Source of the DNA: Epiperipatus broadwayi
Lineage: Eukaryota; Animalia; Onychophora
NCBI GenBank assembly: GCA_028023455.1
Contig: JAQFVV010000003.1
Coordinates: 23,560,001-23,624,000 of the forward strand
Length of the DNA: 64,000 nt
Direction of reading: 5' to 3'
Shown: in pieces, positions 6,281-58,420 of the stretch
Numbering within the stretch: position 1 is the first letter of the stretch
How the letters are laid out: the number at the start of each line of letters is the position of its first letter
Translations under genes and position numbers: made by a program
The notes under the pieces: model-generated
What the model was told of the DNA's origin: nothing
Databases searched by the model: none
What the model saw: only the letters and a program-made list of their open reading frames with translations

Positions 6281-6320
6281 CCCCAGACTAGTTTCTAGCT
6301 TTTGACTTTCATCAGTGAGG
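6281..6320 (-). ncRNA. Minimal type I hammerhead ribozyme (family A copy 1)
   Basis: - strand reads cctca CTGATGA aagtcaaaagcta GAAAC TA GTC tgggg. Stem I is cctca/tgggg, stem III is palindromic ACTAGT, cleavage triplet is GUC; stem II is decayed. Confidence 0.75.
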
Positions 6321-6734: not shown

Positions 6735-6774
6735 CCCCAGACTAGTTTCTAGCTTGTGGCTTTCTTCAGTGAGG
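6735..6774 (-). ncRNA. Minimal type I hammerhead ribozyme (family A copy 2)
   Basis: - strand reads cctca CTGAAGA a-agc-cacaa-gct-a GAAAC TA GTC tgggg. The core is intact; stem II is agc/gct with an A-A closing mismatch. Confidence 0.8.
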
Positions 6775-8228
6775 GATTTTATGCACAAGCCTTCTGGCAT
6801 CCATTAATTACTCTGGTTTGCATTGAGTGACACTATTGTATAAAGAGTTTTGCCTATTTTAATAACAGTTATGAGCAAGCATAAGAAATGGTGATTACAT
6901 GATGTCTATATATTGAAAAAGTTGTAATGTTTGTTTGGATAAAATTTTATATCATGCTTATTCCTTTTTAACAAGAATAATTATAAATTATATTAGCCAG
7001 TATATGGGCATTCTGTCATAAAATTTCATGATACAATATTTATGATTGCCCTTTTCTGTTATATTTGAAGAAGTAAAAAAATCGGTATTCTGCTTTTAGT
7101 GCTAATAGAATAGTTATTTTATCTGTTTGATAATCTATTATAATGAAATAATGATCCTTTAAATGTTATGATATGGTGCTAAAAGTGATAAGTGAGAATG
7201 AATTGTTAAATATGGTGTTAAGAAATGATAAACTAGAACTGATGATCTATTATCACTTGATCATAGTTCTTTGGTGCTATTAAAAAAACAACTATATATC
7301 TATTTTATTACATTTTTTTTTTAAAAAAAGCTGAATTTATATAATAAATTATGATGGCTGGTGAAAAATTATGCTTCCTTGAAATAACTTTTTATTATCT
7401 TTATAAATCTTAATGGAATGAAATTATGTGAGCAGAAATTAAATTAACTTTAATTTTATTACCTCTGACTGTTTGGGGTGACAAATCTATGCTGTTTTGC
7501 TTATAAAAGATGGAGGTGAAATAAAATATTAAACCAGTTACATTTTTCATAAAGAAAATTAATAAGAACATGAAAAAATAATCAAGAACTGTATTATTTT
7601 ACTACTTTTCTCATACCACTGAAAATCCAACAAAATAATGACTTATAGTATATATAGCCATATAAAAAAAATCTTCAATAGGAATTGTTAGGGCAGTAGG
7701 TTTTTGATTCAATACTTTGCCTATGGCCTGGGGTTCTAATCCAGACCAAGTAAAGTTATTTTCAGAGACTTAGGACTTTTTTCATAACCAACTGACCAAC
7801 CAACAATGGTCTGTAGAAGGGTATTTAAACAAAAATGAAGAAACACTAATCACCACTCAGCAATTAACAAGCATTGTTGAGCACTATTATTTTCACTCTT
7901 TCTCTGAGGAGCTGCCCTGTAGTTAGTTAGTTTTAAAAACCTATTTCATCTTTCTATGTCTGGCTATTCCATATAAAATATATATCTGATTTTAAACTTT
8001 CAATTTTCCAAACATCAAAATAAAATACAAAGTCAAAAAATACTGTTTGCTTTTTGATTAATATTTTATATCATTGTGATATATATATATATTCATTTTA
8101 TTATGCAATGAAATCTTTAGCTATTGTTTTCACTTTTTATTTTCTTGCATCTTTTGTTTGTTTTCATTGATCACAGAATCAGTGCCATAAAAATTAAGTT
8201 ATGTTCCGCTCTTGCTCTGTTGTTACTT

Positions 8229-8334
8229 TTTTTTCATTTCATATGTCAAATGCGTTGACTGGGAAGCGAACCCAGGCCAGTTGCTTGGAAGTCAACTATG
8301 CTAACCACTAGACCACCAATGCTTGATTGCTCCA
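8229..8334 (-). pseudogene. tRNA-Gly(TCC)-derived retrocopy/SINE with A-tail and 9-bp TSD
   Basis: 8322..8251 reads gcattggtggtctagtggttagcatagttgacttccaagcaactggcctgggttcgcttcccagtcaacgca, close to the animal tRNA-Gly-TCC consensus but with broken stems. It is followed by tttgacatatgaaatgaaaaaaaa. ttgttactt occurs at 8220-8228 and 8335-8343. Confidence 0.85.
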
Positions 8335-22904: not shown

Positions 22905-23692
22905 ATTATTATTTAAGCCATTTAGATTTCACAGATGATGTAGTTCTTTTTTGCAAATAATGCTTTAGAGCTTCAGGATATGTTACAATAGTTATCAGAT
23001 GAAAATAAAAAAAATAGGATTAAAGATGAATGTTAAAAAAAGTGAAGTAATGTTCAATGGATTTTTTCTAAAGAAGAAAATAAAGATTGATAATGATGAG
23101 TTAGAATAAGTTAATAATTACAATTATCTTGATCAGATTATTTTTACAGATGGAAACATAATGGATGAAATTAATCATAGAATTAAATTTTTGGAATGCT
23201 TCTGGTTGAAATAATTTAATATTAAAAGGAAATATACATATGTGTTTGAAAAGAAAGGTTTTCAATAAATTTGTGTTATCAGTTCTTATTTATGGATATG
23301 AGATCTGGACACTTTAAAAAAGCAATACAGAGACTGCAGACCATTCAAAGAAGTATGGAGATATGCATATTAGGAATAACAAGAAAATGAAATGCATGGT
23401 GAGAGAACAAAACAAACAGGTGCTACTGATATTGAAAAAATTAAGAGACTGAAGTGGAGATGATCTTGATATATTTCTAGAAGAGATGATAATAGAATGA
23501 CAGTTAAAATATTAAACTGGATTCCAAGAGATTGTAAAGACCTAGAAAGAGACCACATGTGAGATGGATGGATGAAATAAGAAAATGTTGAAGTGTGATG
23601 TGAAGAAGAGAGACTAGAGATCGGAGCTGGATTAAACTTGGAGAGACATTCATTCTGCAGTGAATCAATGATGATTGAAAATGATGATGATT
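22905..23692 (+). mobile_element. RTE-clade LINE, 5'-truncated (RT domain 5 to 3' tail)
   Basis: YLSHLDFTDDVV (FADD variant), RTE-like C-terminal region, gatgatgat tail; many stops. Confidence 0.85.
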
Positions 23693-23699
23693 GTAATAT

Positions 23700-25930
23700 C
23701 AATCCATTGCAGAATAAAGGTCTCTTCAAGTTTAATTCAGTTTTTCTGATCTCTAACCTTTCCTCTTCACAATACACCAACAAACTTCTTTATTTTATTC
23801 GTTCATTTCACACATGGCCTTTTTTTTTTTAGATCTTTTACGATCTTTTTGGGACACGATTTAAGATTTCAATTGTTCATTTATTATTATCTCTTCTAGT
23901 AATATTTTAAGTCCAGATCCATTTCAGTCCATAATTCTTTCATCAATATCAGTAATGCTTGTTTGATTTTTTATCATGAATTTTCTTTTAGTCCTTTCTT
24001 GTTATTTCTAACATACATTTCATACTTTGTTGAGTAGTCGGGGTCTTTGTATTGCTCTTTTGTTAAGTATTTAAAATCTTGCTTCCATAAATGAAAATTG
24101 ATAAAACATGTTTATTAAAAACCTTCCTTTTCAACCATATAGGCATATTATATTTCCTTTTAATATTAAGTGTTTTACTTTTGTTAAGTATTCAAAATTT
24201 TGGTTCCATAAATGAAAATTGATAAAACATGTTTATTAAAAACCTTCCTTTTCAAACATTTAGACATATTATATTTCCTTTTAATATTAAGTGGTTTCTA
24301 CTAAAAGCTGTCCATCCAAGTTATAGTTCTATTATTAATTTCATCCTTTATGATTCCATCTATTATAACAATGTGATTAAGATATTTATAGTTATTAATT
24401 TTCTAATTCATTATTTTCTTTATTTTCGTCTGAGAAAATTGATTGAATATTACTTTACCTTTTTAGCATGTATCTTTATTACATTAATTGATAACTCTTG
24501 CAACATTTCCTGAAGATATGAAGCATTATTTACAAAACAAAACAAAACATACAACTTGCAAAATCTAAATGACTTTATTAATAATATTCATTTATTTTTA
24601 CTTCCTTAGCTTAATTTACATAATACTTGTTGTAAAACTGCTGTAAAAAGCTTTGGAGATATGAAATTATTCTGTTGAACACCCTGATCAATGTTAACCT
24701 TTTTAGTATACATGTAATCTAATCATTGCTGTCACATTTTGATAAATATTCTTCAAAATATGACAATGTTCCAGTCTAATATCTTGATGATACAATGTGT
24801 TAATCACTTTATAAATGCTTATAAAATCAAATGTTTTTTCATGATATATAAATCCAAGACATAATGCTAATTCATATTCAATGGTTATTTCTATAACTCC
24901 ATTTAATTCTTGGATATGGTCTATTGTGCAAAAATCACTTTTCACTCCAGTTTGTTCTTTTAATTGGATAAAACCCAATGTTTACTGTAAATGAATTACA
25001 CTTATCTTGCTAAAAATTTTGTATAGTACTATAGATCTGTAATTTCTAATATCTTTTTTATCATCTTTCTTAAACATCAATATTTATTACTGTATTCTTT
25101 CAATTATCTGATATATCTTTCATTTGGACATTTGGTATATAACTTTGACAACAATTTTTCTATTTCTTCACTTATTTTTTTTTAAGATATCAATTATAAT
25201 TTCATCACTTCTTGCGGCTTTTCACTTTATAGATTTAATTGCATGTCTCACTCCTTCATTTAAAATGCTGACCAATTCAGATGATAATAGTCGGGGGTTG
25301 TTTTGTTCTTTATTACTATATAATTCTTCATAGAATTCTTCCAAACATTTCATGATGTCATCTCTCTTTTTCAGTAATAGTTCCATATTTTTTTTTATTG
25401 CAGAAATAACTTTTTTTTCAATACTAAGATGTTTTCTCCTTTTGAATCTTTTATTCTATCTATATTTTTTTTTTTGGTTAATTCACAATTATATTTTTTT
25501 ATTAATGGATCATGTTTATATATTTTCATATTTCTTATTTTCTTTATACATTCCTTGTCTTAGTAGAAAATTTACTGGTAAATTGCTGTTTTTTTTTTAC
25601 CAGCTATCTTTGTTGTAGTTCTTACTTGCACTATCAGTTATCTTCCAGTTGATTTCATTCAAATCTGAATTATCTTAGCAATCTGTTAATATTTTAAAAT
25701 GATTTGCAAGTTCTAATTTAAATTTATTAGAATGTTTTTGAAGATTAGAAATATTAAATGTTAATACTGACTTTTTTATTAGTTTCTCTCTCTCCAGTTT
25801 GCATTAATGTGTTTCTTACATGTGACCAATCAATAATCACTGCCTGTATTGAATCTGTTAAAAACAATACAATTTTGAAACACACACTTTCTATTAATCA
25901 AATATTATTAGATTCTTCTGTACCTTTATT
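23700..25930 (-). mobile_element. RTE-clade LINE remnant (linker/RT/3' end), internally deleted, with a ~121-bp tandem duplication at ~24060-24300
   Basis: ORF-track pieces give TIDHIQELNGVIE..EYELALCLGFIYHEKTFD (RT domain 3) and KNKPPRLLSSEL..LNEGVRHAIKSMK. Its 3' end faces the + copy. Confidence 0.8.
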
Positions 25931-26652
25931 TGGATATATATATAATCTGAATTAATGTTTTAAGTTTCAATGTGTAATTGTTGTTAAGGACAACACATTA
26001 AAAAGTATATATTTAAATACGAGCAGAATTTCATTATATATAAATAATTTGTATATTTATTCTCTATATTGAAGGTTATTAAAATGTAATGCTCACTTCC
26101 AGATCTTATTTTAATCATATTGTTATTTTACAATTATTTTGATTTTTTTTATTCTTACTGTCTACATACTCATTTTGTTGATAATATAGTCTATGATCTG
26201 ATGTAGAATAGAGCCACTATTTACATAGTAACATTATACCAATAAACAAATTGGAAAATAATCAAATTTATACATTTCACAAAAAATCAAAACAACAACA
26301 ACAAAAACTCTATGTATTTAGCAGTCAAACAATATATAATAATTACAAAATTAAATGCATTCAATAAGTGTGATCGTCACAAATTTTTTGTAAGAAATGA
26401 AATTAGTGAGGAGTTGCATTTGGTATCATTGCTAATTTAATTTTTATAGAATGCTTGTGATAATCACACTTACAGAATGTGTTTGTTTTGTAATCATTAT
26501 GCATTGGTTTGATTACTAAATGAATTATTTTCTGGTTTCTTTTCTAAATATAATATATTATTTTTATGTTTTTAAACATAAATATTATTATTTGTTATTG
26601 AAAATGTATTTAAACTTAGTAATTACATTTTCACTTGCTTAATTTAAGAGTA

Positions 26653-29600
26653 ATGATGTGATGTGATGCACTGTGATTTCTTATATGGACTCAGGAATCT
26701 TTCATCAACTATGCCCAGAGAAACCTGTTAGCCACTTTATCTTCACTTTTCATTCCCCACCCTAAGTTTTTCCCATATTCTTCTCTATCCTGCTCCTGCC
26801 CATTTCCACAATATAATCTTTGCCAACTTCATAGCTTTTATATTTGAAACTCCCTTTTCTTAAACCCAGCATAAAAACCAAGAACCCACTTTCTGTATAA
26901 TCACTTTGTTTATATTTATTTTTTCACAACTTCATTATTTGTATCCTTTCTGCTTGCAAGCATTTACATTCAATTAACAGGTGCCTAATATTTTTTATGC
27001 CTCTTCTACATAACTTGCAGACTAAATCACCCATATTTTTCCATTTACATGTATATTCCCTTGTTGCTAAAGATACTGATTGAGTCAACAGTAAACTACT
27101 TTCCTTGCTATTACCATAAATTAACTCACACCAATATTCTGTTTACTTCTATGTATATTTAAATTCTTTTTATTCTCCATACTAGTTCTCCATCTTGCCA
27201 CTATAACACTCAACAATTATCCTAACACAATCATCTCAATTTTTGTATAAATACACTGATATAAATTCTTTATCCAAATCTTCTGCATACCATACTACTT
27301 TTCTCATCTATCTTATTGCCTGTCCTTTATTCACAACCCAATTAAATGCTATTTTGGCTATTCTCTCATTATCCATAAATTGTAATCTACATTTTCATTT
27401 TGCTTTTTGCATCTCTCATATAAAAACTTGATCATTCTGTCTCTCCTTGAATTGCCTTCTGTGCCATCCACACATCTGCATCTAATGCATGTTTTCCTAT
27501 TTCTCTTTGTACTTTTTCTAAGTAATCTAACACCCCTTTATTAACCCATAACACACCATTATCATATGTTAACACTGCTACTGCCACTTCTTTCCATACA
27601 ATTTTAGCTACATCATATTTTTTAATTTCTTTATCAGTTCTTTTCTTTGCTTCATTTTCCAATTTTTCTCCCATTCATTCAAGCAATTTCTCTGATTACT
27701 TAAGATGATTTCCAAATAGTTATATCTATTTACCACAATTTTATATCCATATCTATTTACCACAACTTTATATCCCCCAATAAAAAATTCTTTCTCTTCT
27801 CTTTTCCCAGTATTAATCATCATTACTTTTGATTTTTCTTCACCAAATTTAATTCCCATCTCTTTATCCACTCTTACTCATGTCTTCAGCATAACCTCCA
27901 TATCTTTCCTACTTTCTGTGCCCAAGAAGTCATCATCTGCAAATAAAAGACCTAATAATGTATATACTCCCTTGCCACTCATTAATGCTATCGCTGCCCC
28001 TCTTCCTAGTCTTTCTATTGTTCTCTCTATTTTTCTCAAATACAACAAAATAGATGAAATAGAGCATACCTGCCTTAGTCCCATTTGATTTTTAACTTTA
28101 ACTGATTCTATATTTCCTAATTGATATATATAGTAATTATTTTCCACACAATTACTTAATGAGATCTACTAAAGCTCCACCCATTCCCAAATTTAATAAA
28201 CTTACCCATAATCTATTTCTATTTACTCCATCATATGCCTTCTCTATATCTATAAAAACCAGATATAACTGTCTATCTCTATTTCTACTCATATCTATAA
28301 GTTGTGTAACTACAAATAAACTATTTCCTATATGCCTATCTGATCAAAAACCTCCTTACATTTCTCCCACTATATTATTTTCTTCCATCCATTTTCTACA
28401 ATTTTTGCCATCACATATGTAAAAACTTTCCACTGATGTTACCATTATCGGTTTATAATTGCTTAACTTTCTCTGATCTTTACTCTTTCCTTTAAATAAT
28501 AGCCTACTCTTGTATTATTCCAACTATCTAGAAATTCTCGCTTCTGTGCCATTCTATTAAAACATGATAATAGGTTTTATTTTGCTCTATTTCCTAAATT
28601 CATTACCATCTTTGATGACCATCCATCTAAACCTCTTGCCTTTCCACTTTTCAATTTCTTCCCTGACTCTTTCAATTTATTTTCTGTAAACCTAATATTT
28701 TCATTATTAAATGCTTTCATGTTTGTTATTACTCTGTCCTTTACATCTAACATCTTTTCTATATCCATTACATAATTATTTAAGATTGTCTCTAATTCTT
28801 CTCTAGAGCTACACTATTTCCTCATCATCTAGGAATACTATTTCTCTCTCCCCTACATTCCTTCTTTTAATGTATTTCCAAATCTTTTTACTTCCATCTC
28901 TTCCACTTCTATTAATATAATCCAACAATTTACTATTTAATTTCATTCTCTCTCTATAATTATCTATTTTAGCCAACTTCTCTTTTTAAATATACTTTTC
29001 CCATTTAACATTAGCATCTTTTTCACTTTCTTTGTTCTTAATAGCGCATTTATATTCTCTGTATGCTTCCTCCCTCTCTTTTACATTTTTACTAACTCTC
29101 ACTTTTCTATTATTTCTATTCTTTTGAATATTATCATCTAAAACCCTATTTGACACTTTTTCTACTTCACTACACCATTGCTTATATTAATCCTCAATGA
29201 ATTCTTTCATGATATTCTTCTAACTTATTCTTATCATTTATTTTCCATCCACATCTTTCACTATCCTTTCTACTTTCATTACTATTTTCCATCACATTAC
29301 TAACCATTTCTATTATAAAGAAATTATGATCACTATTACATACTCTCTCTTCATTATTAAACACTTTAATTTTCAGTACTTTATTCATTCTCTCTTTCTC
29401 CATTAATACATAATCTACTGTGTGAAATATATTATTTCTAGACCATATGTATTGTCTGTGATAAATATTCGATAAATTTCCAATGCTCAAATTCACTCTC
29501 TGACAAAAATTCTTCAAAAGTTGCCCATTCTTGTTATCTATATCATTAATTTCTTCAACATTCCCATTTATATCCTCTCTAACCATTATTTTCTTCCTCT

Positions 29601-29676
29601 TTTTTGAACCTCTGTATATCCTTAACTAGTCATTCATATATTTTACTGTTCCACTCTTATTCTAGTTTGACTTATC
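26653..29676 (-). mobile_element. Esterase-ORF1 LINE family copy: APE C-half + RT + CCHC + (CACAT)n tail, decayed
   Basis: APE motifs (EDINGN, HTVDY, NSDH), RT motifs (GLRQ, LLFADD, RYNYL), tail atgatgtgatgtgatgca at 26653; multiple stops and frameshifts; 27-bp duplication at ~27722-27775. Confidence 0.92.
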
Positions 29677-32050
29677 TGATGTGATGTAATGCACTGTGAC
29701 TTTTCCTTAAACAGAGTCAGGAATTTTTCAGCAACTATGCCCAAAGAAACCTGTTAGCCACTTTACCTTCCCTTTCCATTTCCCACCCAAAGTTTTCCCA
29801 TAATCTGCTCCATCCCATTTCCACAACATAATCTTTGTCAACTCCATGGCCTTCATATCTAAATCTCCCTTTTCCCAAGCCCAGCATAAAAAAACCAATA
29901 ATTCACTTTCTGTATAATCACTTAGTTCATATTTGTTCTTCCATAACTTCATTATTTGTACCCTTTCTGCTTTCAAGCATTTACATTCATTTAACAGATA
30001 CCTAATATTTTCTATGCCTTCCTTACAGTATTTGCAGACTAAATTGCCCATATTTTTCCATTTACGTGTGTATTCCCTCCTGTTGCTAAAGATCCTATTC
30101 AAGCCTTGAACAATAAACAACTTTCCTTGCTATTATCATAAATTAACTCACACCCAATGTTCTATTTCAATATATATTTAAATTCTTTTTACTCTCCATA
30201 CTAGTTCTCCATCTCTTTAACTCCCTATTCTTTATTAATGCATCTATTCTTTTATCCCATTCCTTACTACTATAACACTCAACAGTCTTCCTAACACAAT
30301 CATCCCATTTTTTGTACAAGTATACTGATATAAATTCTTTATCCAAACCCTTTGCATAACACTCATCTTGTTGTCTGCTCTTTTATGTGTAACCCAATTA
30401 AATACTCTTTTGGCTATTCTTTTATCATTCATAAACTGCAACCTACCAAACATTTTTATTTTGCTTTTTGCATCTCTTATATCGCTGTCCAAACTTGACC
30501 ATCCCATTTCTCCTTGAATTGCCTCCTTCGCTGTCCACACATCTGCATCTAATGCATGTCTTTTTACTTTCCCTTTGCCCTTTTTCTAAGTAATCTAATA
30601 CCCCGTTACTAACACAAGACACATCGTTACCATATGTTAACCCTGCTACTGCAACTCCCTTCCATACAATTCTAGCTACATCATATTTATTATATGAAAA
30701 CACTGTTAATTTTTTTATCAATCCCTTTTCTTTCTTTCCTTCATTTATCAATTTTTTCTCCCTATCATCTAAGCAATTTTCCTGATTACTTAAGATGATT
30801 CCTAAATAATTATATCTATTCACTACACTTAACTTTACATCCCCCAATAAAAATTCTACATCTTCTTTTTCCCTAGTATTAACCAACATTATATTTTGAT
30901 TTTTTCTTCACTAAATTTAATCCCCATCTTTTTACCCACCCTTGCACATGTCCTCAGCATAGCTTCCATATCTTCTCTTCTTTCTGCACACAAAAAGACA
31001 CAATCAACACAAAAAAGACCAGACAAAGTATATACTTCCTTGACACCTATTAATGGTATCTGTATCCCTCTTCCTAATCTTTCTATTGCTCTCTCCATTT
31101 CACTCAAATACAACAAAAACAAAATAGGTGATATAGGGCATCCTTGCCTTAGTCCCACCCCATTTTTAACTTTAACTTATTCTATATTCACTAATTGATA
31201 TATATATATATAATAATAATTATTTTCATATAATTTCTAAAATAATATCTACTAAAGCTTCATCCATTCCCAAATTTGCTAAACTTATCCATAATCTATT
31301 TCTAGTTATTCTATTATATGCCTTCTCTAGTACTATAAAACTCACATATAACTGTCTACCTGAAATCCTACTCATATCCATAAGTTGTGTAACTACAAAT
31401 AATCCATCTCCTATACACCTATCTGATCTAAAACCTCCTTGCATTTCCCCCACTACCTTATTTTTTTGCATCCATTTTGCAAGTTTTCCAGCCACCATAT
31501 ATGAGAAAATTTATATAAATCTAATGTTACCACTATTGGTCTATAATTGTTTAACTTTCTATGATCCTTACCCTTTCCTTTAAATAATAATCTTATTCAT
31601 GTATTACTCCAACTATCCGGATAAACTCTCTTTAATCTTGTATTACTCCAACTACCCCGATAAACTCTCTTCTGTGCCATCTTATTAAAACAAGATAATA
31701 GCTTTACTTTTGCCCTATGCCCTAAATTCATTACCATCTCTGCTGCCCATCCATCTAAACATCTTGCTTTTCCACTTTTCAATTTTTTTCCTGCCTCATT
31801 CAGTTCATTTTTTGCAAACTTAGTATTTCCCGTTACTATATGCTTTCATGTTTTTTATTACTCTGTCCTTCACATCTAACATCTTTTCTATATCCATTAT
31901 ATATTTATTTAAGATTCTCTCTAATTCTTCTCTAGAGTTACACTCTATTCCCTCATCATCTAGTAACACTATCTCACTCTTCTCTACATTTCTCTTTTTA
32001 ATGTAATTACAATTTTTTTGCTCCCATCACTTCCACTTTTATTATCTCCA
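29677..32050 (-). mobile_element. Second copy of the same LINE (RT to tail), apparently 5'-truncated
   Basis: GEMQGGFRSDR, EKAYNR, GLRQGCPISPILF, RYNYLGI, CKYC..YLLNEC; tail at 29677; homology to the 26.65-28.9 kb copy stops near 32040. Confidence 0.9.
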
Positions 32051-34240
32051 GTGGCTATATACACTATAGCCACCATTCATTATTTTCTTCCTAATCTTAT
32101 CTCAAACCACAAATATTCTTGACATTTAACAGTATTTAAATATTTTTTTTACATAACTCCTATATCACCAGCCTTTTTCTTTTCTATTTATACTCTGCCA
32201 CACTAAGTCTTCCAGCATAGATTTTTCTTCTCTTAAATGTGTTTCCAGTACCAGTAGTATCTCAAGCTTTTCATTTTTAACTGCTTTGTTTAATTCCAGC
32301 CACTTTTCTGGTCTTCTACCATGTTGCATATTCAAACATTCAATTTTAACATTTTTTAATCCTATTTCTTTTATAAATTCTTTTGACTCTTACTCCTCTA
32401 TTACATTTGAAAGTAATTTGCTTACTATTAATTTTACAGACCCATTCCTCGTCACATCTACATTAATATCCAAATCAGCTACCCTTTGTTTATTTCTTTT
32501 ATTTCATTCATTCTTTTTGATAATGCTGCAATTTGTCCCTCCCCCCATAAGTTTTCCTAACTATAATATTTTTTATAAATCAAATTTCTTAAAACTTCAT
32601 TTTCTTGTTTTGCTAAGTGCAATCCAACTTTATTATATAACTCCCTCTTACTAATGAAAAAAGTCCCACATATCCACAAACATAACCATTTTTCTCACTT
32701 AATTTTTTCAATCTCTTATTTATAGCACATGCCTTATGTAACATATATCTATTGGCAAATCTTAGTAATAATCCAACCATTCCTACTTTTCCTTTAATCT
32801 TACTCAAATTACTAAGCAATTCTATGTACTCATCCCTTACTCTCTCTGATGGCTCCAACAAATTATTTGTCCCTATCATAACATACACATCTCTACTCCC
32901 TTGTTTCTTTACTTTATCTGCAATGTCTTTAACCCTAGCTCCAGGCAATCTACCATAACATACACATTTCTATTCCCTTTTCTTTATATTATCTGTAATG
33001 TCTTTAATTCTAGTTCCAGACAAACATATTCTTATTTAACTGTTTCAGCTCCAGGCAATCTACCATAACATGCACATTTCTATTCCCTTTTCTTTACATT
33101 ATCTGTAATGTCTTTAATTCTAGTTCCAGACAAACATATTCTTACTTAACTGTTTCTATTTTCTCTTGCAATTACATCTCCACATTCTTTGATTAGTGAA
33201 TCTCCTATCAGTAATATCTCATAGTTTACTTTTCCTAATTCATCTGTAACAATCTCTTCCATCTTCTGGACTTCCTTGTCTATTCCTTCCTTATCATTTC
33301 TATCCAATAATTCCTTTATCTGCTTTCACTTCATCTCTAATGATTTTAATTCTGCTTCTACATTCTTTACCTCTTTCTCTATCTTACTTATTTTTTGGCT
33401 AACCAACTTCATTGCATTACTTATTTTGTCATCCATATCTCTTGTCATTCCACTAAAACCATACCATATCCTATCTTTCTCAATTATATTTTGCTCTATT
33501 TCTCCTGACTTTATTTTCTAACTATCTGCACTTAAAACCATTTTTTCATCTCTTTTATCACATTTTCATATAGTCTACATAACCGCACACCTGTTACAGC
33601 TTTCCTAGTTTTATTTAAGCATTTCAAATGATAAACCTTATCACATATGGTACACTCTACCACAGCATGCCTAATTTCTTTCTGACTATTATATATACAT
33701 TGTGAGATATAAATATAATTTATATTTCTTATTTTTCAAGTCTCCTACTTTATACTTAACTTTATGTTTTTTCTCCTATTCTTCAAATCCCTTTATAAAA
33801 AAAGGAGGAGAAAACTTTTCTTTCTTTCAAAGGCGATCGATAAAAATGTATTTTCTAACATTACACCTCAAAAACATTATCTTCTTTCTCAAATAAATCA
33901 TTCTCTTTCATAAATTAAAAAAATTCTTTAATAGCAAACCTACTAAAAAACTATATAATCTTACAATATAACTTAGTTTTACATTCTCCTTACAGTAACA
34001 AACACTCACAAAATATATATTTTCCTTTTATATTTAAGATGGCATAACTAAACACTTTCCAAACATTATCAATATTATTACCAATCTTCCCAAATCCAAT
34101 TAAATCTATTTCTCTTCACTCCAGTTTTCTTTTCACTTCTATACAGTAAGTAAAAAACTTAGTAACATCAAAATTTTTCCATGTAATATTAAAAAAAATA
34201 AAAATAAACTTTAACATCTTGCAGCACAAATCACTTACGT
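32051..34240 (-). mobile_element. 5' half of the LINE: 5'UTR, ORF1 (PHD-like finger, coiled coil, GDSL/SGNH esterase) and APE N-terminus
   Basis: VECTICDKVYHLKCL at 33601-33660 then CGLC; coiled-coil-like KISKIEKEVKNVEAELKSLE; EILLIGDSL (GDSL at 33194-33205); LPGARVKDI..VMIGTNN; APE LNMQ..LETHL. The 5' end is approximate. Confidence 0.85.
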
Positions 34241-38279: not shown

Positions 38280-41195
38280 TCAGATGATATTCCTAACCTT
38301 CAGAACATTATAATTAATTTAAATTAGGTCTTGCAAATTTTGAAGATGGATCAGATTTGAAAGAAATAATAGTAATAAAAAACTGTTATAGCATTAAGAG
38401 CGGAAACAAAGATAGTCTGTAGCAATTTACTAGTAAATGTTTTGCTGAGTCAAGACAATATATGAAGAAGAAAAAAAAAGGAATATGAAAAAATATAAAA
38501 ATAATCCATTAAGAAGAACTGAGTATCTAGGGTTTTGTAAAATCATAAGTAAATGTGTTAACTAGATATAAGAAAATATAATTATGATTTACCAAGGAAA
38601 GGGAAGTGAATAAGAGTCTCATTAATGAGATATAAAAAAATATAATTGGGAATTACCAAGAAAAGCTATCGAAGTGAACTAAAAGTCTCAAAAGTGTAAA
38701 ACAACATTTTGGAATTAGTAGAAAACTTATTTTTGCAATAAGAAGAGAAGATAGAACAATTACAAAAACAAAAGATGATATCATGAAGTATATGGAAGAG
38801 TTCTATGAAGAATTATATAAATATAAAGAACAAAAGCAATCCCTATAATTGCTACATCTTCTGAATTATCCAGTATTTTAAGTGAAGAAATGAGTCATGC
38901 AATTAAATCTATGAAAAAAGGAAAAGCTCATGGTAATGATGGAATTATAATCAATATTTTAAGCAAGTGAATAAATAGAAAATTTGTTTCCAAAGTTATA
39001 TACCAAATGTTTTCCTTAAGGTTTGTGATGATCTGTTATAGTTATATTTATTGTTTGGACTATTTCCATCATCTAATGTGAATATTGAATGTCTTTAGAA
39101 AAATTTAATTTTATTTAGATATTCCAAATACATTCAACTGTTAGTAATAGCATATCAAACAGGTTAGTATATGCACAACATTTCAAGATGTATTATTCTT
39201 CTTTCTTCTTCAGGTATTGCTAGCCCGACAAGTGACAATAGCAGCATGGGAATTGAGCCTGGACCCTTAGATTCTTCAATATTGAATTTTAATGTAATGC
39301 TCTAACTAACAGCCATTAGGTGTTGCCTGCCTGACCAATGACAATACTAGTATGGGAATCAAACCTAAACCCTTAGATTCTTGAGTACTGAATTTTAAGT
39401 AATGCTCTAGCCAACCATCCTCATTTGGTTAGAACATTATCTTAAAAAACAATACCCAAGAATCTAAGGGTCCAGGTTTGATTCCTATTCCAGTACTGTC
39501 ACTGATTAGGTCAGAAATATCTGTAGATGAGGGGTCTTAATTGGTTAGAGCATTACCTTAAAATTCAACACTCAAGAATCTAAGGATCCACGTTCGATTC
39601 CCATGTTAGTACTGTCACTGCTTAGGCCAGCAACATCTGAAGAAGAGAGAATAATACCTTTCAAAACATTGTGCAAATATTAACCTGTTTGATGTGCTAT
39701 TAGTAACAGTTGAATGTATTTGGAATATTTAAATAAAGTTAAATTTTTCTAAAGACATTCAATACTCATATTAGATTATGGAAATAGTCCAAACAATAAA
39801 TACAATTATATACCAAATGTCTAAATAATAAAGATGTACCAGATGATTGGAAGAATATAAGAGTAATTTTAACATATAAAAAAGATGATAAAGAAGACAT
39901 TAAAAATTACAGACCTAGAAGTCTTTTATCAGTTCTATGCAAAATTTTTACCAAAAGAATTACAATTGTCTATAGTAAAATCTTGATTTTAACTAATCAA
40001 AAGAATAAACAGGATTTAAAAATGGTTTTACTACAGTGAATCACATCCAAGTGTTGAGAGAAGTTACAGAAAGTATCAGTGAAACAGAGTTGCCATCATG
40101 TTTTGAATTTGTGGATTATGAAAAGGCATTTGTCTGTATAAGTATTTATTTGTGATTAAAGTATTGGATCATCAAAATATAGACCCAGGATATTGTCATA
40201 TTTTGAAAAATATTTATAATGCAAATGCCATGATTAAATTATATAGTTATATCAAAAATTTAATTTCCTTCTGTTACTAATTGTAAAATATTAAAACCAA
40301 CAACAACAGGGGTGTCGATTTTAATATTTTATGGTTGTTCTAAGGAGATTAACATTGAAAAAGATATGCCATAGGATGATCTCATATCTCCAAAACTTTT
40401 TACAGTAGTTTTAAAAGAAATATTTTGTGGATTAGAGGATTAAAAGTAAATAGTGATTATTTAAATCATCTAGATTTTGCAGATGTATTGTTTTTTTTTT
40501 TGAAAATAATGTTTAAGAGCTTCAGGAACTGTCACAAGAATTATCACATGAAAGTAAAAAAATAGGACTAAAGATAAATGATAAAAAGACTAAAGTAATG
40601 GTTCAATGGATTTCTTAAAAAAAGATGAATAATAATGCACTTGGTCAAATTATTAATACAGATGGAAACATAATGGATGAAATTAATTATAGGATTAAAC
40701 TTGGATGGAGTGCTTTTAGTAAAAATAATTTCATATTAAAAAAGAATTGCCTAAATATGTTTGAAAAGAAAAGTTTTTAATACATGTCTTTTGCTAATTT
40801 TCACTTATGGATCTTAGACTTGAACACTTAATAGAAAAGCAATATAGGTACTTTCAACCAATAAATGAATTATGGAGTGATGTGTTAGGAATAACAAGAA
40901 GAGATCAAAAATGTAATATATGGGTGAGAGAATAAACAGATATTACTGACATCATTGAAAGAATTAAAAGAGTAAAGTAGAGCTGGTCTGGACATATTGC
41001 TAGAAAGTAGGTTAATAGGTGGATAGTTAAATTCTCAAAATAGATCCCAAAAAATTGTAAAAGACTTAGAAAGAGACAACATATAAGATGAATAGATGTT
41101 GGAGTAAATAGTTAGTAATCAGGAAAACTGAATTAAACATGGAGAGACCTTCACCTTGCAGTGGATAGATAATGGTTGAAAATGACAATGCTTGT
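38280..41195 (+). mobile_element. RTE-clade LINE (linker, RT, 3' end), decayed, interrupted by an insertion
   Basis: KLYTKC|LNNKDVPDDWKN..KNYRP..LLSVLCKIFTK, VDYEKAF, DFAD, RTE C-terminus and gagagacc..tgcagtggat 3' end. Confidence 0.9.
39011..39805. mobile_element. Fold-back (palindromic) insertion: 2 tRNA-like units + hammerhead-like core per arm, 15-bp TSD
   Basis: ttatataccaaatgt occurs at 38996-39010 and 39806-39820; removing the insert restores the RTE frame. Arms are 39037-39414 and 39425-39810, spacer 10 nt. A-box-like tggttagagc; B-box gttcgattccc at 39592-39602. Confidence 0.88.
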
Positions 41196-45099: not shown

Positions 45100-45850
45100 A
45101 ATATTTCTGTAGTGTAATTTTCACTACATCACTCTCATGCAAGATAGGTCAAGTACTGGTTTCTTATCAGCTTTTTACACCTTATGGAGGGATGTAATCA
45201 TAAACATAAGATCAAGGATGTAAAAAAGACATATGATTCCCAAGATGCACATTTTGTGCTGAACCAGCACTCATTAGTTGGCCCAGACTACAATCTCTTA
45301 CACATATCTTTACAATTTAATTGATAATTGGCAAAATTGTTGCACACACAACCTTGACACAAAACTTTTAATGGAAATATATTATTAATTTTTAGTAGTC
45401 ATTCATTAGATTAGAGATTTTCCAATAATAAATAATATTTCTGTAGTGTAATTTTCACTACACCATTCTCACACAAGGTAGGGACTAACTTTTATTTGCT
45501 TTTAATACCCTGTGGAGGGATGTAATCATAAACATATAATCCAAGACATGTGAAAAAGATGTATGATTCCTATGATACACATTTTATGCTTAACCAGCAC
45601 TCATCAGTTGATCCAGACCACAATCTCTTACACATATCTTTTATCACTTTAGTATTACTGTTTAATTAATATGTCAAACACAACAAATTTGACACAAAAC
45701 ACTTAATATAGAAGTGTATTAATAATTTTCATTGGTCATTCATTAGATGAAGGATTGAGAATGGTGTAGTGAAAATTACACTACAGAAATATTAATTATT
45801 GCATAATTTCTAGTCTAATGAATGACTAATAAAAATTATTGATATGCAAA
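45100..45850. repeat. Family B tandem repeat (period ~330-334) plus inverted segment 45757-45850, with hammerheads at 45239-45282 and 45569-45612 (-)
   Basis: aatatttctgtagtgtaattttcactac occurs at 45100 and 45434 and inverted at ~45765-45795. Cores read gccaa CTAATGA gtgct-ggttc-agcac AAA ATG-TG-CAT C ttggg and atcaa CTGATGA gtgct-ggtta-agcat AAA ATG-TG-TAT C atagg. Confidence 0.85.
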
Positions 45851-47684: not shown

Positions 47685-47770
47685 AAAAAAAATTGAGGAT
47701 CACATGGATTCAAACCAGGAACATTTTGATCTAAAATCTAGTACTTTGTCTCTGAGCTATATTCGCAACT
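47685..47770 (-). repeat. Decayed tRNA-derived (Phe/Lys-like) SINE remnant; a second, more decayed one on + near 47890-47960
   Basis: - strand reads gcgaatatagctcag...agattttagatcaaaatgttcctggtttgaatcc, resembling tRNA A/B boxes. Confidence 0.5.
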
Positions 47771-49929: not shown

Positions 49930-52900
49930 TAAGTAGTTCAAAGATATTAAGGTTGGACAATAGGTTCTATAAATGAGAGATTGAAAAAAATATACAAGAG
50001 AAATAATGTTATGTTTGTGGATGTGTGGGAATTTTTTATTAATAATAGGGAATTATACAATAAAGGTAGATTGCACTTAGCAAAACAAGGAAATGAAGTA
50101 TTAGGGAGTTTGATTTATAAAGAATATTATAGTTTGAGAAACTTATAAAGGGGAGTAGAGTTTTAAATCACAATATTGTCAAAAAGAAAAATGGATGGGA
50201 TGTAAAAAATAAATGAGGGGTAGCTGATTTGAATATAAATGTAGATGTCAATAGGGATTGGGTCTGTAAAATTAATGGTAAGCAAGTTACTTACAAATGT
50301 AATGGAGAAGGTCAAAATAATTTATAAAAGGATAGTAAGAAAAGAAGACATTGTTAAAATTGGATATTTGAATATGCAAGATGGTATAAAACCAGAAAAG
50401 TGGCTGAAATTAAACAAATCAGTTAAAAATGAAGAGCTTGAGGTATTAGCAGTAGTAAAAAGACATCTAAGAGAAGAAGAACCTATACTGAAAACTTGAT
50501 ATGGCAGGATATAACAATATGGGTTATGTCAAAAAATATTTAAATACTATGAAGTGTCAAGAATATTTATGGTTTTAGATAGGGTTAGAAAGACAATGGA
50601 ATGGAATAGTAGCATATATGAATGTCTAGTTAACGATATACAGATGTTCAAAAAAAAGTGAAAAAATAATGATTAAATGCCTAGTTAAGAATATACAGAG
50701 GTTCAAAAAAAGGTGAAAAAAATAATAGTTATAGGAATATGAATAGGCATGCTGAAGAAATTGATGATATGGATAACAAGAATGGACAGCTTTTGAAAAT
50801 TTTTTGTCAGATTGAATTTGAGCATTGGAAGTTTATCAAATATTTATGAGAAACAATACACATGGTCTAGAAATAATATATTTCACACAATAAATTATGT
50901 ATTAGTAGAGAAAGAGGGAACAATAAAGTATGGAAAATTAAAGTGTTTGATAATGAAGAGAGAGTATGCAATGATCATAATTTCGTTAGAAATGGTTAGC
51001 AAGGTGGTGGAAAATAGTAATAAAATTAGAAAGGATAATGAAAGATGTGGATGGAGAATGAATGATAAGAATAAGTCCGAAGAATTATAAATAAAAGTAT
51101 AAGAAATCATGGAAGAGTTTGTTGGGAGTGAATGTAAGGACTGCTGTGATGAAGTAAAAAAAGTGTCAAATAGGGTTTTAGATGAGAATATTCAGAAGAA
51201 TAAAAGTAATAGAAAAGTGAGAATTAATAAAAGTGTAAAAGAGAGGGGAAAAAGCAAGCAGAGACTATAAATGTGCCATTAAAAGCAAAGAAAGTGAAAA
51301 AGTTATTAATATTAAATGGGAAAACTATTTAAATAAGTTGACTAAAATAGACAATTATATATAGAGAGAATGAAATTAAATAGTAAATTATTGGAGGATG
51401 AGATGGGAGTAAAAATTTTTTGGAAATATATTAAAAGAAGGAAGAAATAGTATTACTAAATGGTGAGAAAAAAACTGTATAGTTCTAGAAAAGAATTAGA
51501 GACAATCCTAAATAAGTATATAATAGATATAGAAAAGATGCTAGATATGAAGGACAGAGTAATAACAAACATAAAAGCACATAGTAATGGAAATGAATTA
51601 AATGAGACAGGGAAGAAGTTGAAAAGTGAAAAGACAAGAAGTTTAGATTGATGGGCAGCAGAGATGATGATGAATTTAGGAGATAGGACAAAATTAAATT
51701 TATCATATTTTTAATAAGATGGCATAGAAAAGAGAATTTCCAGATAGTGGAATAATACAAGAGTAAGACTTATTTAAAGGAAAGGGTAAGAATAATAGAA
51801 AATTAAACAATTATAGACCGATAGTGGTAACATCAATGTTATATGAAGTTTTTCCATATATGGTGGCTGGAAGAATGGCAAAATGGTTGGAAAAAAATAA
51901 TTAGTGGGAGAAATGCAAGGAGGTTTTCAATTGGATAGGCATATAGGAGATAGTTTACTTGTAGTCACACAACTTATAGATATGAGTAGGAATACAGGTA
52001 GACAGTTAAATCTGGTCTTTATAGATATAGAGAAGGCATATGATAGAGTAAATAGAAATAATTATGTGTAAGTTTAATAAATTTGGGAATGAATGGAGCT
52101 TTAGTGAATCTTATTAAGAGATTGTTTGAAAATAATTACTATATGTATCAATTAGAAAATATAGAATCAGTTAGAATTAAAAATGGGATGGGACTAAGGC
52201 AAGAAAGCCCTATGACACCTATTTTGTTTTTGTTACATGAGAGAAATGGAGAGAGCAATAGAAAGACTAGGAAGAGGAGTAGAGATACCATTAATAGATG
52301 ACAATGGAGTGTATATATTATCAGGTCTTTTATTTGCTGATGATATATTTTTGTGCATAGAAATTAGAGAAGATATGGAAGTTATGCTGATGACATGTAC
52401 GAGGATGGGTAAAGAGATAGGAATTATATTTAGTGAAGAAAAATGATGATAAATTTTTGGTGAAAGAGAAAAGAAAGAATTTTTATTAGGAGATATAAAG
52501 TTAAATGTGAATAGGTATAACTATTTGGGAATTGTTTTAAGTAATCAGAGAAATTGTTTGGATGAATGGGAGAAAAAATTGGTAAATGAAGCAAAGAAAA
52601 TAAAAGAACTGATAAAAAAATTAACAGCATTTTCATATAATAAATATGATTTAGCAAGAATTGTATGGAAGGAAATGATAGTAGCAGAGTTAACTTATGG
52701 TAATGATGCATTATATGATAGTAAAGGAGTGTTAGATTACTTAGAAAAATTATAAAGAGAAGTAGGAAGACATGCATTAGATGCAGATTTGTGGATGTAA
52801 AGGAGGTAATTCAAAGAGAAATGGGATGATCAAGTTTTATATGAGAGCAAAAAGTAAATGATAGATTGCAATTTATGAATAGTAAGAGAATAACCAGAAT

Positions 52901-53070
52901 AGTATTTAATTGAGTTATGAGTAAAGGACAGGCAAAAAGATGGATGAGAAAGATAGAATGGTATGCAGAAGATTTGGATAAAGTCTTATGTCAGTATACT
53001 CAAACAAAAGGTGGGATGATTGTGTTAGGAAAATTGTTAAGTGTTATATTGGCAAGAAATGGACTAGAAG
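49930..53070 (+). mobile_element. Esterase-ORF1 LINE family copy (end of ORF1, APE, RT), both ends truncated, decayed
   Basis: IGYLNMQDG, HTINY, GEMQGGF, DIEKAYD, GLRQ, LLFADD, RYNYLGI; collinear with the 26.6-33 kb copies; short tandem duplication ~50627-50720. Confidence 0.9.
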
Positions 53071-56635: not shown

Positions 56636-58420
56636 TTTTTTATTTTTATTTTTATAAAATATAAAATTTTTATTCAGAAATTTGGTTACAACACATGATA
56701 ACAGTTAAACATAGAATATATTACATGATAATCAGGGGGATAAAAGTTCAATATTGATATCTTGCTTGACACCAGGCTAAAAGGACTAATGTGAAGCATA
56801 TCAGCAAGGAACGAGTCCGGAATAGTATCTTGTTGATAGGTGACCATGCTTGCATGTTTCATACAGTTCAACGATAGATCTAATCTTTTATCCATACTCG
56901 GTATGAACAAATTGACTCTTCATATTGGAGGTTACATCCATAAAACTCAGAGTCTGGGCAATAATCACGCAGAGCAAGGTGAGTCATCACAAAGGGATGC
57001 AGGCCATTCAGCCTCAAATCACTCTCCAGGGTAGGAGCTTTCTATTCAGGAGTGAAAGGGATCAGCTTTTTGGGGCAAATCAATAACCTCCATGTAGAAT
57101 CGTAGATGTAAGAGGGGGCCAAATTTTGGTTCCTTTTCCAAATTTTTTTCCATTTTATTAATATAGAGCTCGAGCGGACTTTCCAGTGCATGATTAAAGG
57201 TGAACCAGCACCGCGTATACCATAGTGAGAATAGTACAAATGTTGTTAATCATATCTCCGGGATAGATCTACATAGTATATTCTCAATGAGAGTCGACAG
57301 AGCAGATATATTATTTAACATGGAGGCTATAAGGACCCTGTAGGGGTGAAGGGAAACAATGGCAGAGGAGTAAAGAGAAGTTTCATTCTCTCTGAGACAT
57401 AGTGAGCAAGTGGATTCTATGTTTGAGAATCCTTGGCGATGCACCAGAAAGTGTTTAGTAGGCAAAGCATTAATATTTATCTTCATTAGGAAATCAAAAT
57501 ATTTAGGTTCAAGGAACCATCGCTTGAATTTCTTGATTAGCAGATGGTTGTTAAGCCTGAGGAGAGTTGATCCTGCAGAAACATCAGGATTAAGAATGTA
57601 GTATGCATCCCAGAACTTGATTTTTATTAAGGTCGATTTGTTAGGAAGCATAGTATGTTTGGAGATAAGACATGCGAGGGTTGCCAGCCAATCAGTCCCA
57701 ATTGGGGGAGGCTTATCTGTGGGAGTGACATCTCTGAAGGGTGAATAGTTGGGATACTGCAGACACATTCTGTAGAAAAAATTGTAGGAATGTTGAAATA
57801 TAAAAGTATCTATGGAATGTAGGGATAATTCATTGAGTTTTGTGTGTTTCTGTAGATTTCTCAAGCTTATAGTTGCACTCCCCCCCCCTCTAATGAAATC
57901 AGTGCACATCTTGTGTATCTTCCTGATGAAGACTTTGGTAAAATTGACTACTGGGGTGAAATAGGATATTCTAGGGAATATTAGTATATTGATAAGGGAA
58001 GATTTGACGAACATGGACATGTAAACTTTGGATAGAGAGGATGTGATTCTCTGTGTGGATTGAATTTGCTTTCCTTGGAAAGATCTCATGGCAGAAGTGG
58101 ATTCAAATATAGGGAAGCCCAAGAAGTTCTGAGGCTTCACTGCAAATGGTCCTGGAATGGTCTTACCTGAAGATATATACCAGGCTGATGACTTGGCCAT
58201 ATTAAACTGGAGGCCATATTGATCAGAGAATTCTTTAAGTATTGATAAAAGTCTGGAAATTAAATTTTTTTGATGGAAGGAAAATAGCCAAGTCATCCAT
58301 ATATAGGTGATGTGATGAATTGATGTATTTAAAATTGGGATGAATGCCAGGAAGAGATCTCTCAATTTAAAGAAGCAGAGGGTTGAGGTAAGTGATGAAA
58401 AACCCATCTGACCCAAACAT
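56636..58420 (-). mobile_element. L1/Tx1-like non-LTR retrotransposon, 5'-truncated (RT domain 4 to zf-RVT, 3'UTR, AATAAA, A-rich tail)
   Basis: RT frame FITYLNPLLL*IERSLPGI..HHLYMDDLAIF (YMDD at ~58292-58303) shifts at an A-run into ORF 57250..58416 (GLQFNMAKS, NFLGFPI, LINILIFPRISY, CSLC..ENET); AATAAA at 56669-56674. Confidence 0.85.

Follow-up and report, generated by a model that had tools for sequence, protein, structure and literature searches.

How does a long palindrome of tRNA-like and hammerhead-like sequences come to lie between two perfect direct copies of one short target, in the middle of a decayed reverse-transcriptase frame? This question is raised by a locus in a LINE-rich stretch of 64,000 nucleotides from Epiperipatus broadwayi, the whole of which was analyzed and is referred to here as the window. 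The locus is probably a single old and inactive integration of a very high-copy tRNA-derived SINE, for which a Penelope-like element (PLE) supplied the machinery in trans, with the palindrome as the integration product. Its parts, in window coordinates, are:

38680-38995, plus strand: upstream part of the host, a decayed LINE reverse-transcriptase frame, from the reading frames; itself a high-copy repeat in the reads
38996-39010, no strand: left copy of the TSD, 100% repeat match
39011-39041, minus strand: one-sided 3′ extension ("tail") of 31 nt, left arm only, from the arm alignment
39042-39172, minus strand: structured 3′ region of the left arm, a long hairpin (z -2.4) with T5 at 39099-39103 and an AATAAA-like end
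39173-39213, minus strand: hammerhead-like motif of the left arm, with CTGAAGA at 39207-39213, GAAA intact, helix II decayed with a 3-nt insertion, and TG at both inferred CpG sites
39214-39309, minus strand: left outer tRNA-derived unit, whose head extends to about tRNA position +7, from repeat comparison
39318-39423, minus strand: left inner tRNA-derived unit, whose head extends to about tRNA position +2 to +4, from repeat comparison and the family 5′ end
39415-39423, no strand: head-to-head junction, read against the family 5′ consensus
39417-39535, plus strand: right inner tRNA-derived unit, 3′ end CTGTAGATGAG, from repeat comparison
39536-39636, plus strand: right outer tRNA-derived unit and spacer, with a box A remnant at 39542-39551 and box B at 39592-39602
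39637-39674, plus strand: hammerhead-like motif of the right arm, with CTGAAGA at 39637-39643, an unpaired A, helix II GAGAG/CTTTC and an 8-nt loop
39675-39805, plus strand: structured 3′ region of the right arm, a long hairpin (z -2.7) in the deepest read bins, with T5 at 39744-39748 and AATAAA at 39795-39800
39806-39820, no strand: right copy of the TSD, 100% repeat match
39821-41100, plus strand: downstream part of the host LINE frame (PDDWK...NYRP...FADD-like motifs), from the reading frames and a weak R2 reverse-transcriptase match

The original prediction described a retro-insertion with a perfect 15-bp TSD into an RTE frame, and as an insertion into a LINE frame this description holds. 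The direct copies of the TSD, TTATATACCAAATGT, at 38996-39010 and 39806-39820 are 100% identical, and they bracket a 795-bp palindrome within the decayed frame. Removal of one copy restores a continuous reading frame across the site (...NLFPKLYTKC/LNNKDVPDDWK..., where the slash marks the site). Paralogues of the host LINE are uninterrupted at this position, as seen in contigs of the DNA run with joints from 38962 to 39804-39810 and from 39008 to 39824, and 329 contigs carry host-LINE sequence straight up to 39806. As to the kind of LINE, comparison of the flank with R2 reverse transcriptases gave only a weak match (E 0.07), and a Pfam search with short pieces of the flank gave none.

The palindrome is composed of a left arm (39011-39416, minus strand) and a right arm (39417-39805, plus strand), oriented head to head with their 3′ ends outward and 82% identical across 372 aligned nucleotides. 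Each arm carries two tRNA-derived units, followed by a CTGAAGA...GAAA motif (AAAA in the right arm) and a structured 3′ region of about 130 nt. The predicted palindrome is thus confirmed in its arms but not in its symmetry: the left arm goes 31 nt beyond the end of the right one (39011-39041). Identity between the arms is 75-77% in the heads versus 92% in the tails (p = 7e-5). At the junction (39415-39423), ATCCT could belong to the 5′ end of one inner unit or of the other, a case of microhomology. Sub-threshold Rfam matches at the palindrome centre belong to plant miRNA precursor families; a miRNA-family reading of the centre was rejected, the matches merely reflecting the long hairpin.

The tandem units, two per arm, are about 106-116 nt long. 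The right outer unit contains tggttagagc at 39542-39551 and gttcgattccc at 39592-39602, and family majority letters from the contigs were noted within it at 39569, 39591 and 39623. The four local units have all kept only a degraded box A, and all four head junctions lie at about tRNA +2 to +7. The internal Pol III boxes A and B follow each other as in a tRNA: the 5′ end of the family includes TGGCTCAGTTGG, and the units contain GGTTCGATTCC. Upstream of 39541, 183 contigs read GGCAGGATGGCTCAG, a clean tRNA 5′ end with box A. The two tRNA-like units predicted for each arm were therefore recovered, with clean boxes in the family consensus. So was the claimed excess in box spacing of about 13 nt over a mature tRNA, a hand count on a family-like head giving 13-14 nt more than in tRNA. 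The accompanying reading as an intron-containing pre-tRNA drew no support from ARAGORN, which with default settings reported 0 tRNA genes in the four units or the family-like head. With lowered thresholds it returned a tRNA-Ser with an intron, which was discarded as nonsensical. The Rfam tRNA model had no match at E ≤ 10 in any of the four units. The four units cannot be folded as tRNAs. The arms are supported as tRNA-derived SINE-like units, which would have been transcribed by Pol III.

The motif between the heads and the 3′ regions keeps CTGAAGA in both arms and GAAA in the left arm only. After helix II, the right arm reads AAAA, CA (putatively a former CG) and TT, and then GTG, which pairs with an upstream CAT. 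The complementary decay of the arms noted in the original prediction is real: the arms show CA versus TG at exactly both proposed CpG sites, and the reconstruction of an ancestral TCGAAACGTT by CpG decay appears sound. The same discordance suggests that the right arm lost its G12 through CpG decay. It also points to a CG at 15.2-16.2 (TG in the left arm versus CA in the right), intact in neither of the two arms. With both CpGs restored, the right arm has one nucleotide left unpaired between A9 and 10.1; its helix II is 5 bp long and has G10.1-C11.1 as the closing pair, and positions 15.2-16.2 form a palindromic CG. In its present state the left arm has neither the unpaired nucleotide nor the G10.1-C11.1 arrangement, and its three extra nucleotides would separate the core from helix II by 4 nt. 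Pairs of helix II are regained in the left arm when the family-majority letters are put in at 39189 and 39200; with this correction, one helix II position is changed on both sides relative to the right arm (A-T versus G-C), the sole two-sided change. Helix I is limited to 3 bp in either arm (G-U/U-A/G-C and G-C/U-A/G-U) in the cleavage-competent register. RNAfold favours a shifted pairing in which the cleavage site is buried, and the hammerhead regions fold no better than shuffles (z -1.4 and -0.6). A structural descriptor, written after the site had been seen, matches only this site in the window, with about 0.01 matches expected per 64 kb of Markov-1 sequence.

A better-looking PLE-type hammerhead motif is located at about 6290-6330 on the minus strand of the window. 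Rfam misses that motif as well, so the lack of a match in the Rfam hammerhead search of the present site counts for little. The region was also considered as a third, truncated tRNA-like unit and this identity was dropped, its alignments to the four units being no better than shuffles in seven of eight tests. A putative hammerhead is a plausible call, and the motif is most likely a relic of a PLE-derived 3′ module. In the present copy CpG decay, at C11.1-G12 and also at 15.2-16.2, has left both motifs dead; any self-cleavage is something that we infer.

The 3′ regions form stable folds in both arms and end without poly(A) or a microsatellite; AATAAA lies 5 nt from the end of the right arm. A conserved T5 about 60 nt ahead of the 3′ end would make Pol III terminate early. 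No LINE in the window, the host copy included, is similar to the 3′ region. The 64-kb window contains no PLE reverse transcriptase, GIY-YIG gene or further sequence resembling the 3′ region, and no second copy of the family.

The wider family was studied with 84,135 contig pieces from one DNA run, placed on a 1.6-kb stretch (1,601 letters). It is very high-copy, with tens of thousands of contig pieces in this one run, and it is also seen in DNA runs of other, related species. Depth reaches 4.5-5.2 million in the 3′ region (39680-39787) versus 0.8 million in the head, a roughly sixfold bias that is the pattern expected from 5′ truncation. Many family pieces among the contigs are non-palindromic. 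In other copies, a joint from 39185 to 39541 connects a nearly complete head with an arm that is cut off at the hammerhead, as expected if every fold-back is made afresh. Joints between opposite strands were also encountered among the contigs; these were left out of account as apparent artefacts of placing simple copies on a palindromic reference, since their mirror coordinates are contiguous. Loose-end contigs ahead of 39693 read TTTTAAAAAATTGTG, without GAAA. Protein look-ups of three window ORFs, one of them a 44-aa stop-free frame spanning head and hammerhead, returned nothing, and viral, metagenome and prokaryote-genome collections scanned for exact patterns yielded only one chance 21-mer, in an Acinetobacter genome. 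In the proposed layout, a family member starts with at least one tRNA-like head, which contains the internal Pol III boxes; a spacer comes next, then a small hammerhead motif of Penelope type, and last a structured 3′ region of about 130-160 nt.

Integration by PLE machinery may be pictured as a short series of events. A staggered cut with nicks 15 bp apart would yield two 3′ ends, and reverse transcription would be primed from both of them with SINE RNAs as templates. Synthesis of each cDNA would continue up to the RNA 5′ end, near tRNA position +2 to +7, after which a microhomology of a few bases would let the two cDNAs join head to head. The 31-nt 3′ tail, which is optional, would remain on one arm. 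The connection with Penelope-like elements drawn in the original prediction fits the head-to-head arms, and fits also the one-sided extension, which that prediction had missed. It is only through the architecture of the insertion that a PLE partner can be suggested. A more detailed version of the PLE reading is offered tentatively: a PLE-dependent Pol III SINE whose cDNAs were made from separate RNAs and stitched at their +1 ends, the four heads representing four RNAs and the minimal hammerhead acting in trans as a dimer. Four RNAs would explain why the heads differ three times more than the tails. If this version were true, PLE template jumping would be naturally recorded in such loci, and they would represent the first clear example outside flatworms of PLE machinery mobilizing Pol III transcripts.

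A rather unlikely alternative dispenses with the PLE. A tRNA SINE dependent on an RTE or other non-LTR partner would have been inserted as two cDNAs primed at both nicks, and CTGAAGA...GAAA would be a chance occurrence in a purine-rich stretch. The LINE-rich surroundings are in keeping with this, as is the weakness of the hammerhead, with its 3-bp helix I, no intact arm, folds that do not surpass shuffles, and some family contigs that lack GAAA; a PLE gene is likewise not seen in the window. However, the 3′ region resembles no LINE there, not even the host copy, and it lacks the poly(A) or microsatellite end. The motif also bears three hallmarks that lie outside the pattern used in the original prediction. 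Furthermore, a fully overlapping head-to-head dimer with a 31-nt one-sided tail has been described for PLEs and is stated to be absent from target-primed reverse transcription by LINEs (PMC8557442).

Other alternatives concern the palindrome itself. The original prediction considered it a mobile, bidirectional unit; central tRNA-like promoters would drive outward, self-cleaving Pol III transcripts, and the unit would be copied as a fold-back. The heads do face outward from the centre in both arms, but this proposal is very unlikely. The fold-back most likely arose at integration, since the arms end unequally and their heads have diverged far more than their tails; the latter difference would not be expected from one common source for both arms. 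The joint from 39185 to 39541 in other copies is what fresh formation of fold-backs would produce, and outward transcription from the centre cannot give an RNA with 400-nt inverted arms. Bidirectional Pol III activity fares poorly given the degraded box A of every unit and the early T5. A fold-back or MITE-type DNA transposon, whose long terminal inverted repeats happen to consist of SINE sequence, would account for long inverted-repeat arms between direct duplications and is still highly improbable. The 31 extra nucleotides at one end mean that the termini are not mutual inverted repeats, and the family has a 3′-biased abundance with many non-palindromic pieces. To our knowledge, a 15-bp TSD exceeds those of known cut-and-paste superfamilies. 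There is just as little to recommend a single SINE insertion later made palindromic by inverted duplication at the DNA level, for example through a replication template switch. Palindromes can form in this way and the arms have diverged, but such an event would invert the flanking 15-mers or leave one of them. The direct orientation of the two TSD copies contradicts it, and the host frame resumes exactly.

Under the preferred reading, integration of a SINE by PLE machinery, the locus is one old, inactive insertion that is likely to have no function of its own. Its interest lies in the process. The literature on PLE integration asks how the tandem and inverted structures and the one-sided tail come about. 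An abundant, short, non-coding passenger with PLE signatures would supply thousands of alignable integration products that document junction rules, tail usage and TSD lengths, and it would show PLE machinery acting in trans on Pol III transcripts. For annotation, the family accounts for many TSD-flanked palindromes of this genome, which might otherwise be taken for MITEs or miRNA-like hairpins.

Several known systems share features with this element. Animal non-LTR retrozymes are also non-autonomous, hammerhead-bearing short repeats, and they have been proposed to be PLE-dependent (bioRxiv 10.64898/2026.07.22.740005). In retrozymes, tandem monomers that each possess a hammerhead are arrayed head to tail and give rise to circular RNAs, whereas the present element is a dispersed, TSD-flanked insertion in which only the tRNA-like head is repeated in tandem, the repeat ending at CTGAAGA, some 32 nt ahead of the predicted cleavage site. 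A closer parallel in design is found in schistosomes. Sm-alpha and Sj-alpha are high-copy, short, SINE-like retroposons in which a tRNA-derived, Pol III-type head is joined to a hammerhead motif of type I; a set of 2,342 tRNA-Gln-like predictions from S. mansoni proved to be Sm-alpha (PMC2770079). In a comparison made by description only, the Sm-alpha hammerhead is canonical and Rfam-detectable, whereas the one here is a minimal PLE-type variant without an Rfam match. The present window is also much more AT-rich (24-30% GC) and the heads are often in tandem, unlike in Sm-alpha.

The minimal hammerheads of PLEs (min-HHRs) have hallmarks that include an unpaired nucleotide after A9, G10.1-C11.1 and a palindromic 15.2-16.2, and they are also reported in pairs, one motif per strand, at distances of 100-700 bp (Cervera and de la Pena 2014, PMC4209133). 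In its restored form the present motif would be similar in all of these, in its CUGANGA and GAAA boxes, in its short helix I and in the near absence of helix III, which makes such motifs dimer-dependent. It differs in that helix II has 5 bp versus 7-8 and helix I 3 bp versus 4-5, and in that it is recovered only once two CpGs are restored.

PLE insertions, with their pLTRs, carry a one-sided tail of 31 bp or 30-40 bp (PMC3846280; PMC8557442). The present insertion shares with them the head-to-head inverted arms with outward 3′ ends, the TSD, the 31-nt extension of one arm and a hammerhead motif within the repeated arm (PMC3846280; PMC8557442; PMC4209133). Unlike PLE insertions, it has no RT/GIY-YIG ORF between or near its arms, tRNA-derived heads replace PLE 5′ sequence, and both arms are near full length where a PLE has one strongly truncated. 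The architecture, which the original prediction did not recognize, is thus made of familiar parts: Sm-alpha already combines a tRNA head with a hammerhead, and PLE insertions as a rule have inverted arms placed head to head. The locus illustrates well a type of event that is already known and does not represent a new class.

The insertion at 39011-39805 is an imperfect palindrome of 795 bp between two copies of the 15-mer TTATATACCAAATGT, located at 38996-39010 and 39806-39820 by repeat comparison of the window. The element is flanked by a decayed reverse-transcriptase frame that becomes continuous once one copy of this target site duplication (TSD) is removed (NLFPKLYTKC running directly into LNNKDVPDDWK). 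With both TSD copies found and the frame resuming, the original prediction of a palindromic retro-insertion with a perfect 15-bp TSD inside a LINE frame is upheld. That prediction had also named the host as RTE; the reverse-transcriptase frame stands, the RTE identity is no more than putative. Pfam returned nothing on the short stop-free pieces of the host frame, and its best match among solved structures was to R2 reverse transcriptases, weakly (E 0.07). Two related LINE copies lie elsewhere in the window, at 26000-34000 (-) with a GC skew of -0.4 to -0.6 and at 50000-53000 (+) with +0.3 to +0.56, and contain RVT_1 (E 8e-9 at 30892-31176), endonuclease pieces and several stop-free stretches of 90-150 aa. 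A further stop-free frame of 402 aa at 57253-58458 (-) has a weak RVT_1 C-terminal match, and RVT_1 and zf-RVT occur in its neighbours in the protein atlas. No homologue of this frame, or of any window ORF tried, was found in a large protein collection from which the organism seems to be missing.

The element consists of two head-to-head arms, each with a CTGAAGA motif after its tandem units:

39011-39416, minus strand: left arm
39207-39213, minus strand: CTGAAGA of the left arm
39417-39805, plus strand: right arm
39637-39643, plus strand: CTGAAGA of the right arm

Alignment of the two arms over 372 positions gives 82% identity. Reading outward, each begins with two tandem head units of ~106-116 nt, followed by CTGAAGA, a short hairpin and GAAA or AAAA, and closes with ~130 nt of AT-rich sequence that stops just past AATAAA (39795-39800). 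The two ~100-bp units and CTGAAGA that had been foreseen for each arm are thus present in both.

Sequencing runs were aligned to 38600-40200 at 80% likeness: a DNA run from the same organism, a pair of RNA-labelled runs, and a DNA run from a related species. From the same-organism DNA run, 84,135 contig pieces aligned; the host LINE and the inserted sequence each have a very high copy number, and the SINE family was found in runs of other species too. Host-LINE paralogues are uninterrupted at the site (joints 38962 to 39804-39810 and 39008 to 39824), and 329 contigs have host-LINE sequence ending in TTTTTGGCAAAG directly before 39806; for a repeat, these paralogues are the nearest thing to an empty site. 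Summed depth in the DNA run reaches 4.5-5.2 million over the 3′ region (39680-39787) versus ~0.8 million over a tRNA-like unit (39518-39625), the pattern of 5′-truncated retro-copies, which places the heads at the centre and the 3′ ends outward. An exact 21-mer match to the SINE tail pattern at 7693-7713 of an Acinetobacter genome (locus L001) is due to chance and irrelevant to the element.

Neither ARAGORN nor Rfam calls a tRNA in any of the four head units, and a family-like head built from read-table sequence likewise goes unrecognised by ARAGORN. Despite this silence, sequence features mark the heads as tRNA-derived. Upstream of 39541, 183 contigs have GGCAGGATGGCTCAG, which together with the following TTGGTTAGAGC corresponds to the acceptor 5′ strand, the box A and the D arm of a textbook tRNA. 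Box B, GGTTCGATTCC, lies 13-14 nt farther downstream than tRNA spacing. The family 5′ end and box B support the tRNA origin originally proposed, and the box spacing, put at ~13 nt longer than in a tRNA, is confirmed; recognition as tRNA by ARAGORN or Rfam failed. None of the four local units keeps an intact box A. At 39569, 39591 and 39623 their consensus agrees with the family-majority letters, which makes each unit a copy of the family sequence that mutated independently. Spacer-like sequence of the kind that follows a unit also precedes the family head; tandem heads with varying junctions therefore seem common among family members. Elsewhere in the window, an intact tRNA-Gly(TCC) at 8251-8322 (-) (ARAGORN; Rfam tRNA, 42.3 bits) is the sole Rfam match over the gathering threshold, and a weaker tRNA-like match (24 bits) lies at 47695-47766 (-). 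Sub-threshold Rfam matches to the plant miRNA precursor families MIR7504, MIR2606 and MIR2593, at 39354-39486 and 23620-23750, are long hairpins of inverted repeats rather than miRNA genes.

All four head junctions, the central one included, fall at about tRNA position +2 to +7, and at the centre ATCCT is assignable to either inner unit. Such junctions fit cDNAs reaching the 5′ end of RNAs begun at tRNA-like +1 and, with the good A and B boxes of the family consensus, support Pol III transcripts as the probable templates. A T5 run at 39744-39748 (mirrored at 39099-39103), ~60 nt before the 3′ end, is conserved between the arms and in the family's deepest part; it would end Pol III transcription early unless read through. 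Measured against the 3′ region, the bin 39572-39625 (T-loop and spacer) is 5-13x richer in X10 and X12, both RNA-labelled, than in the DNA run. This is only a hint, contig depth being a poor gauge of expression; its source could be Pol III transcripts of copies that carry heads, or cross-matching.

The most telling feature of the element is taken to be its one-sided extension: in the arm alignment the left arm runs exactly 31 nt (39011-39041) past the end of the right, which the original prediction did not mention. Loose ends of the family past 39792 continue for at least ~8 nt like this extension, and the tail is therefore element sequence, not target. A fully overlapping head-to-head dimer with a one-sided tail of 31 nt has been described for Penelope-like elements (PLEs) and, according to PMC8557442, is not seen when LINEs insert by target-primed reverse transcription. 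Head-to-head arms, long TSD and one-sided tail together match the PLE insertion described there. A later inverted duplication at the DNA level is excluded because both 15-mers are direct, and a fold-back DNA transposon is unlikely given the mismatched ends of the element and the 15-bp TSD. The proposal that the fold-back was itself mobilised as a unit is probably wrong. The arms end at unequal points, and two indels separate them, one of 10 nt where the units meet and one of 3 nt in helix II. A single folded-back cDNA would be expected to leave mirror-image units more closely related to each other than to any other unit, with a likeness equal to that of the tails; every unit pair, within or between arms, is about equally distant (74-83%), and the heads are 75-77% identical versus 92% for the 3′ regions (50 differences in 205 positions versus 10 in 130; Fisher p = 7e-5), a threefold greater divergence of the heads. 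It is possible that the heads mutate faster; separate RNA templates for the arms, perhaps for the heads too, fit better. The read-table joint 39185 to 39541, in which an arm cut off at the hammerhead meets a near-full head, is consistent with each fold-back forming anew at integration.

That a genuine PLE-type hammerhead was present in the ancestor of the family is about as likely as not. Across the entire element, CA in the right arm faces TG in the left at two adjacent-column pairs and no more, and both lie inside the proposed core. This classic footprint of ancestral CpG makes TCGAAACGTT a sound reconstruction of the putative ancestral core, as first proposed from complementary decay. Restoring both CpGs turns the right arm into CUGAAGA, then one unpaired A, a helix II of GAGAG/CUUUC whose G-C pair adjoins the core and whose loop has 8 nt, GAAA, CG, UU and GUG, the last pairing with an upstream CAU; in this restored form all three PLE min-hammerhead hallmarks are present. 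For PLE min-hammerheads, dual motifs on opposite strands have been reported at spacings of 100-700 bp (PMC4209133), and the two motifs here are ~420 bp apart. In the left arm, family-majority letters at 39189 and 39200 bring back a 5-bp helix II with one pair changed on both sides relative to the right. A CpG-decay-tolerant descriptor with the hallmark features matches nowhere else in the window than at this site, and 6.4 Mb of Markov-1 sequence gave a single match (~0.01 per window, a generous figure since the descriptor was written after the site was seen). Against a hammerhead, helix I has only 3 bp, RNAfold favours a shifted pairing that hides the cleavage site, the motif folds not above shuffles, the 3-nt insertion in the left arm would part helix II from the core, and one class of family contigs has TTTTAAAAAATTGTG at the motif position. 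Rfam finds no hammerhead at E<=10 in the element region, nor at E<=5 across the whole window, a silence that says little because it also passes over a well-formed PLE-type motif at ~6290-6330 (-).

That motif belongs to another repeat family, at 6285-6335 (-) and ~6745-6780 (-), and reads CTGATGA ... GAAACTAGTC with a self-complementary ACTAGT; an Rfam search of 861 nt missed it even at E<=10. A third family, at 45230-45290 (-) and 45575-45615 (-), has CT(G/A)ATGA, a helix GTGCT/AGCA(C/T) and then AAAATGTG, a decayed C-GAAA-CG pattern like that of the element.

The architecture had been presented as unrecognised. Schistosome elements Sm-alpha and Sj-alpha share the design of tRNA head plus hammerhead, and in Schistosoma mansoni 2,342 tRNA-Gln-like predictions proved to be Sm-alpha (PMC2770079). 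For PLE insertions, inverted arms, a one-sided tail and min-hammerheads are already well documented, and a recent argument holds that animal retrozymes derive from PLEs and are non-autonomous (bioRxiv 10.64898/2026.07.22.740005). With both the tRNA head plus hammerhead and the PLE-type insertion already known, the locus belongs to a known kind.
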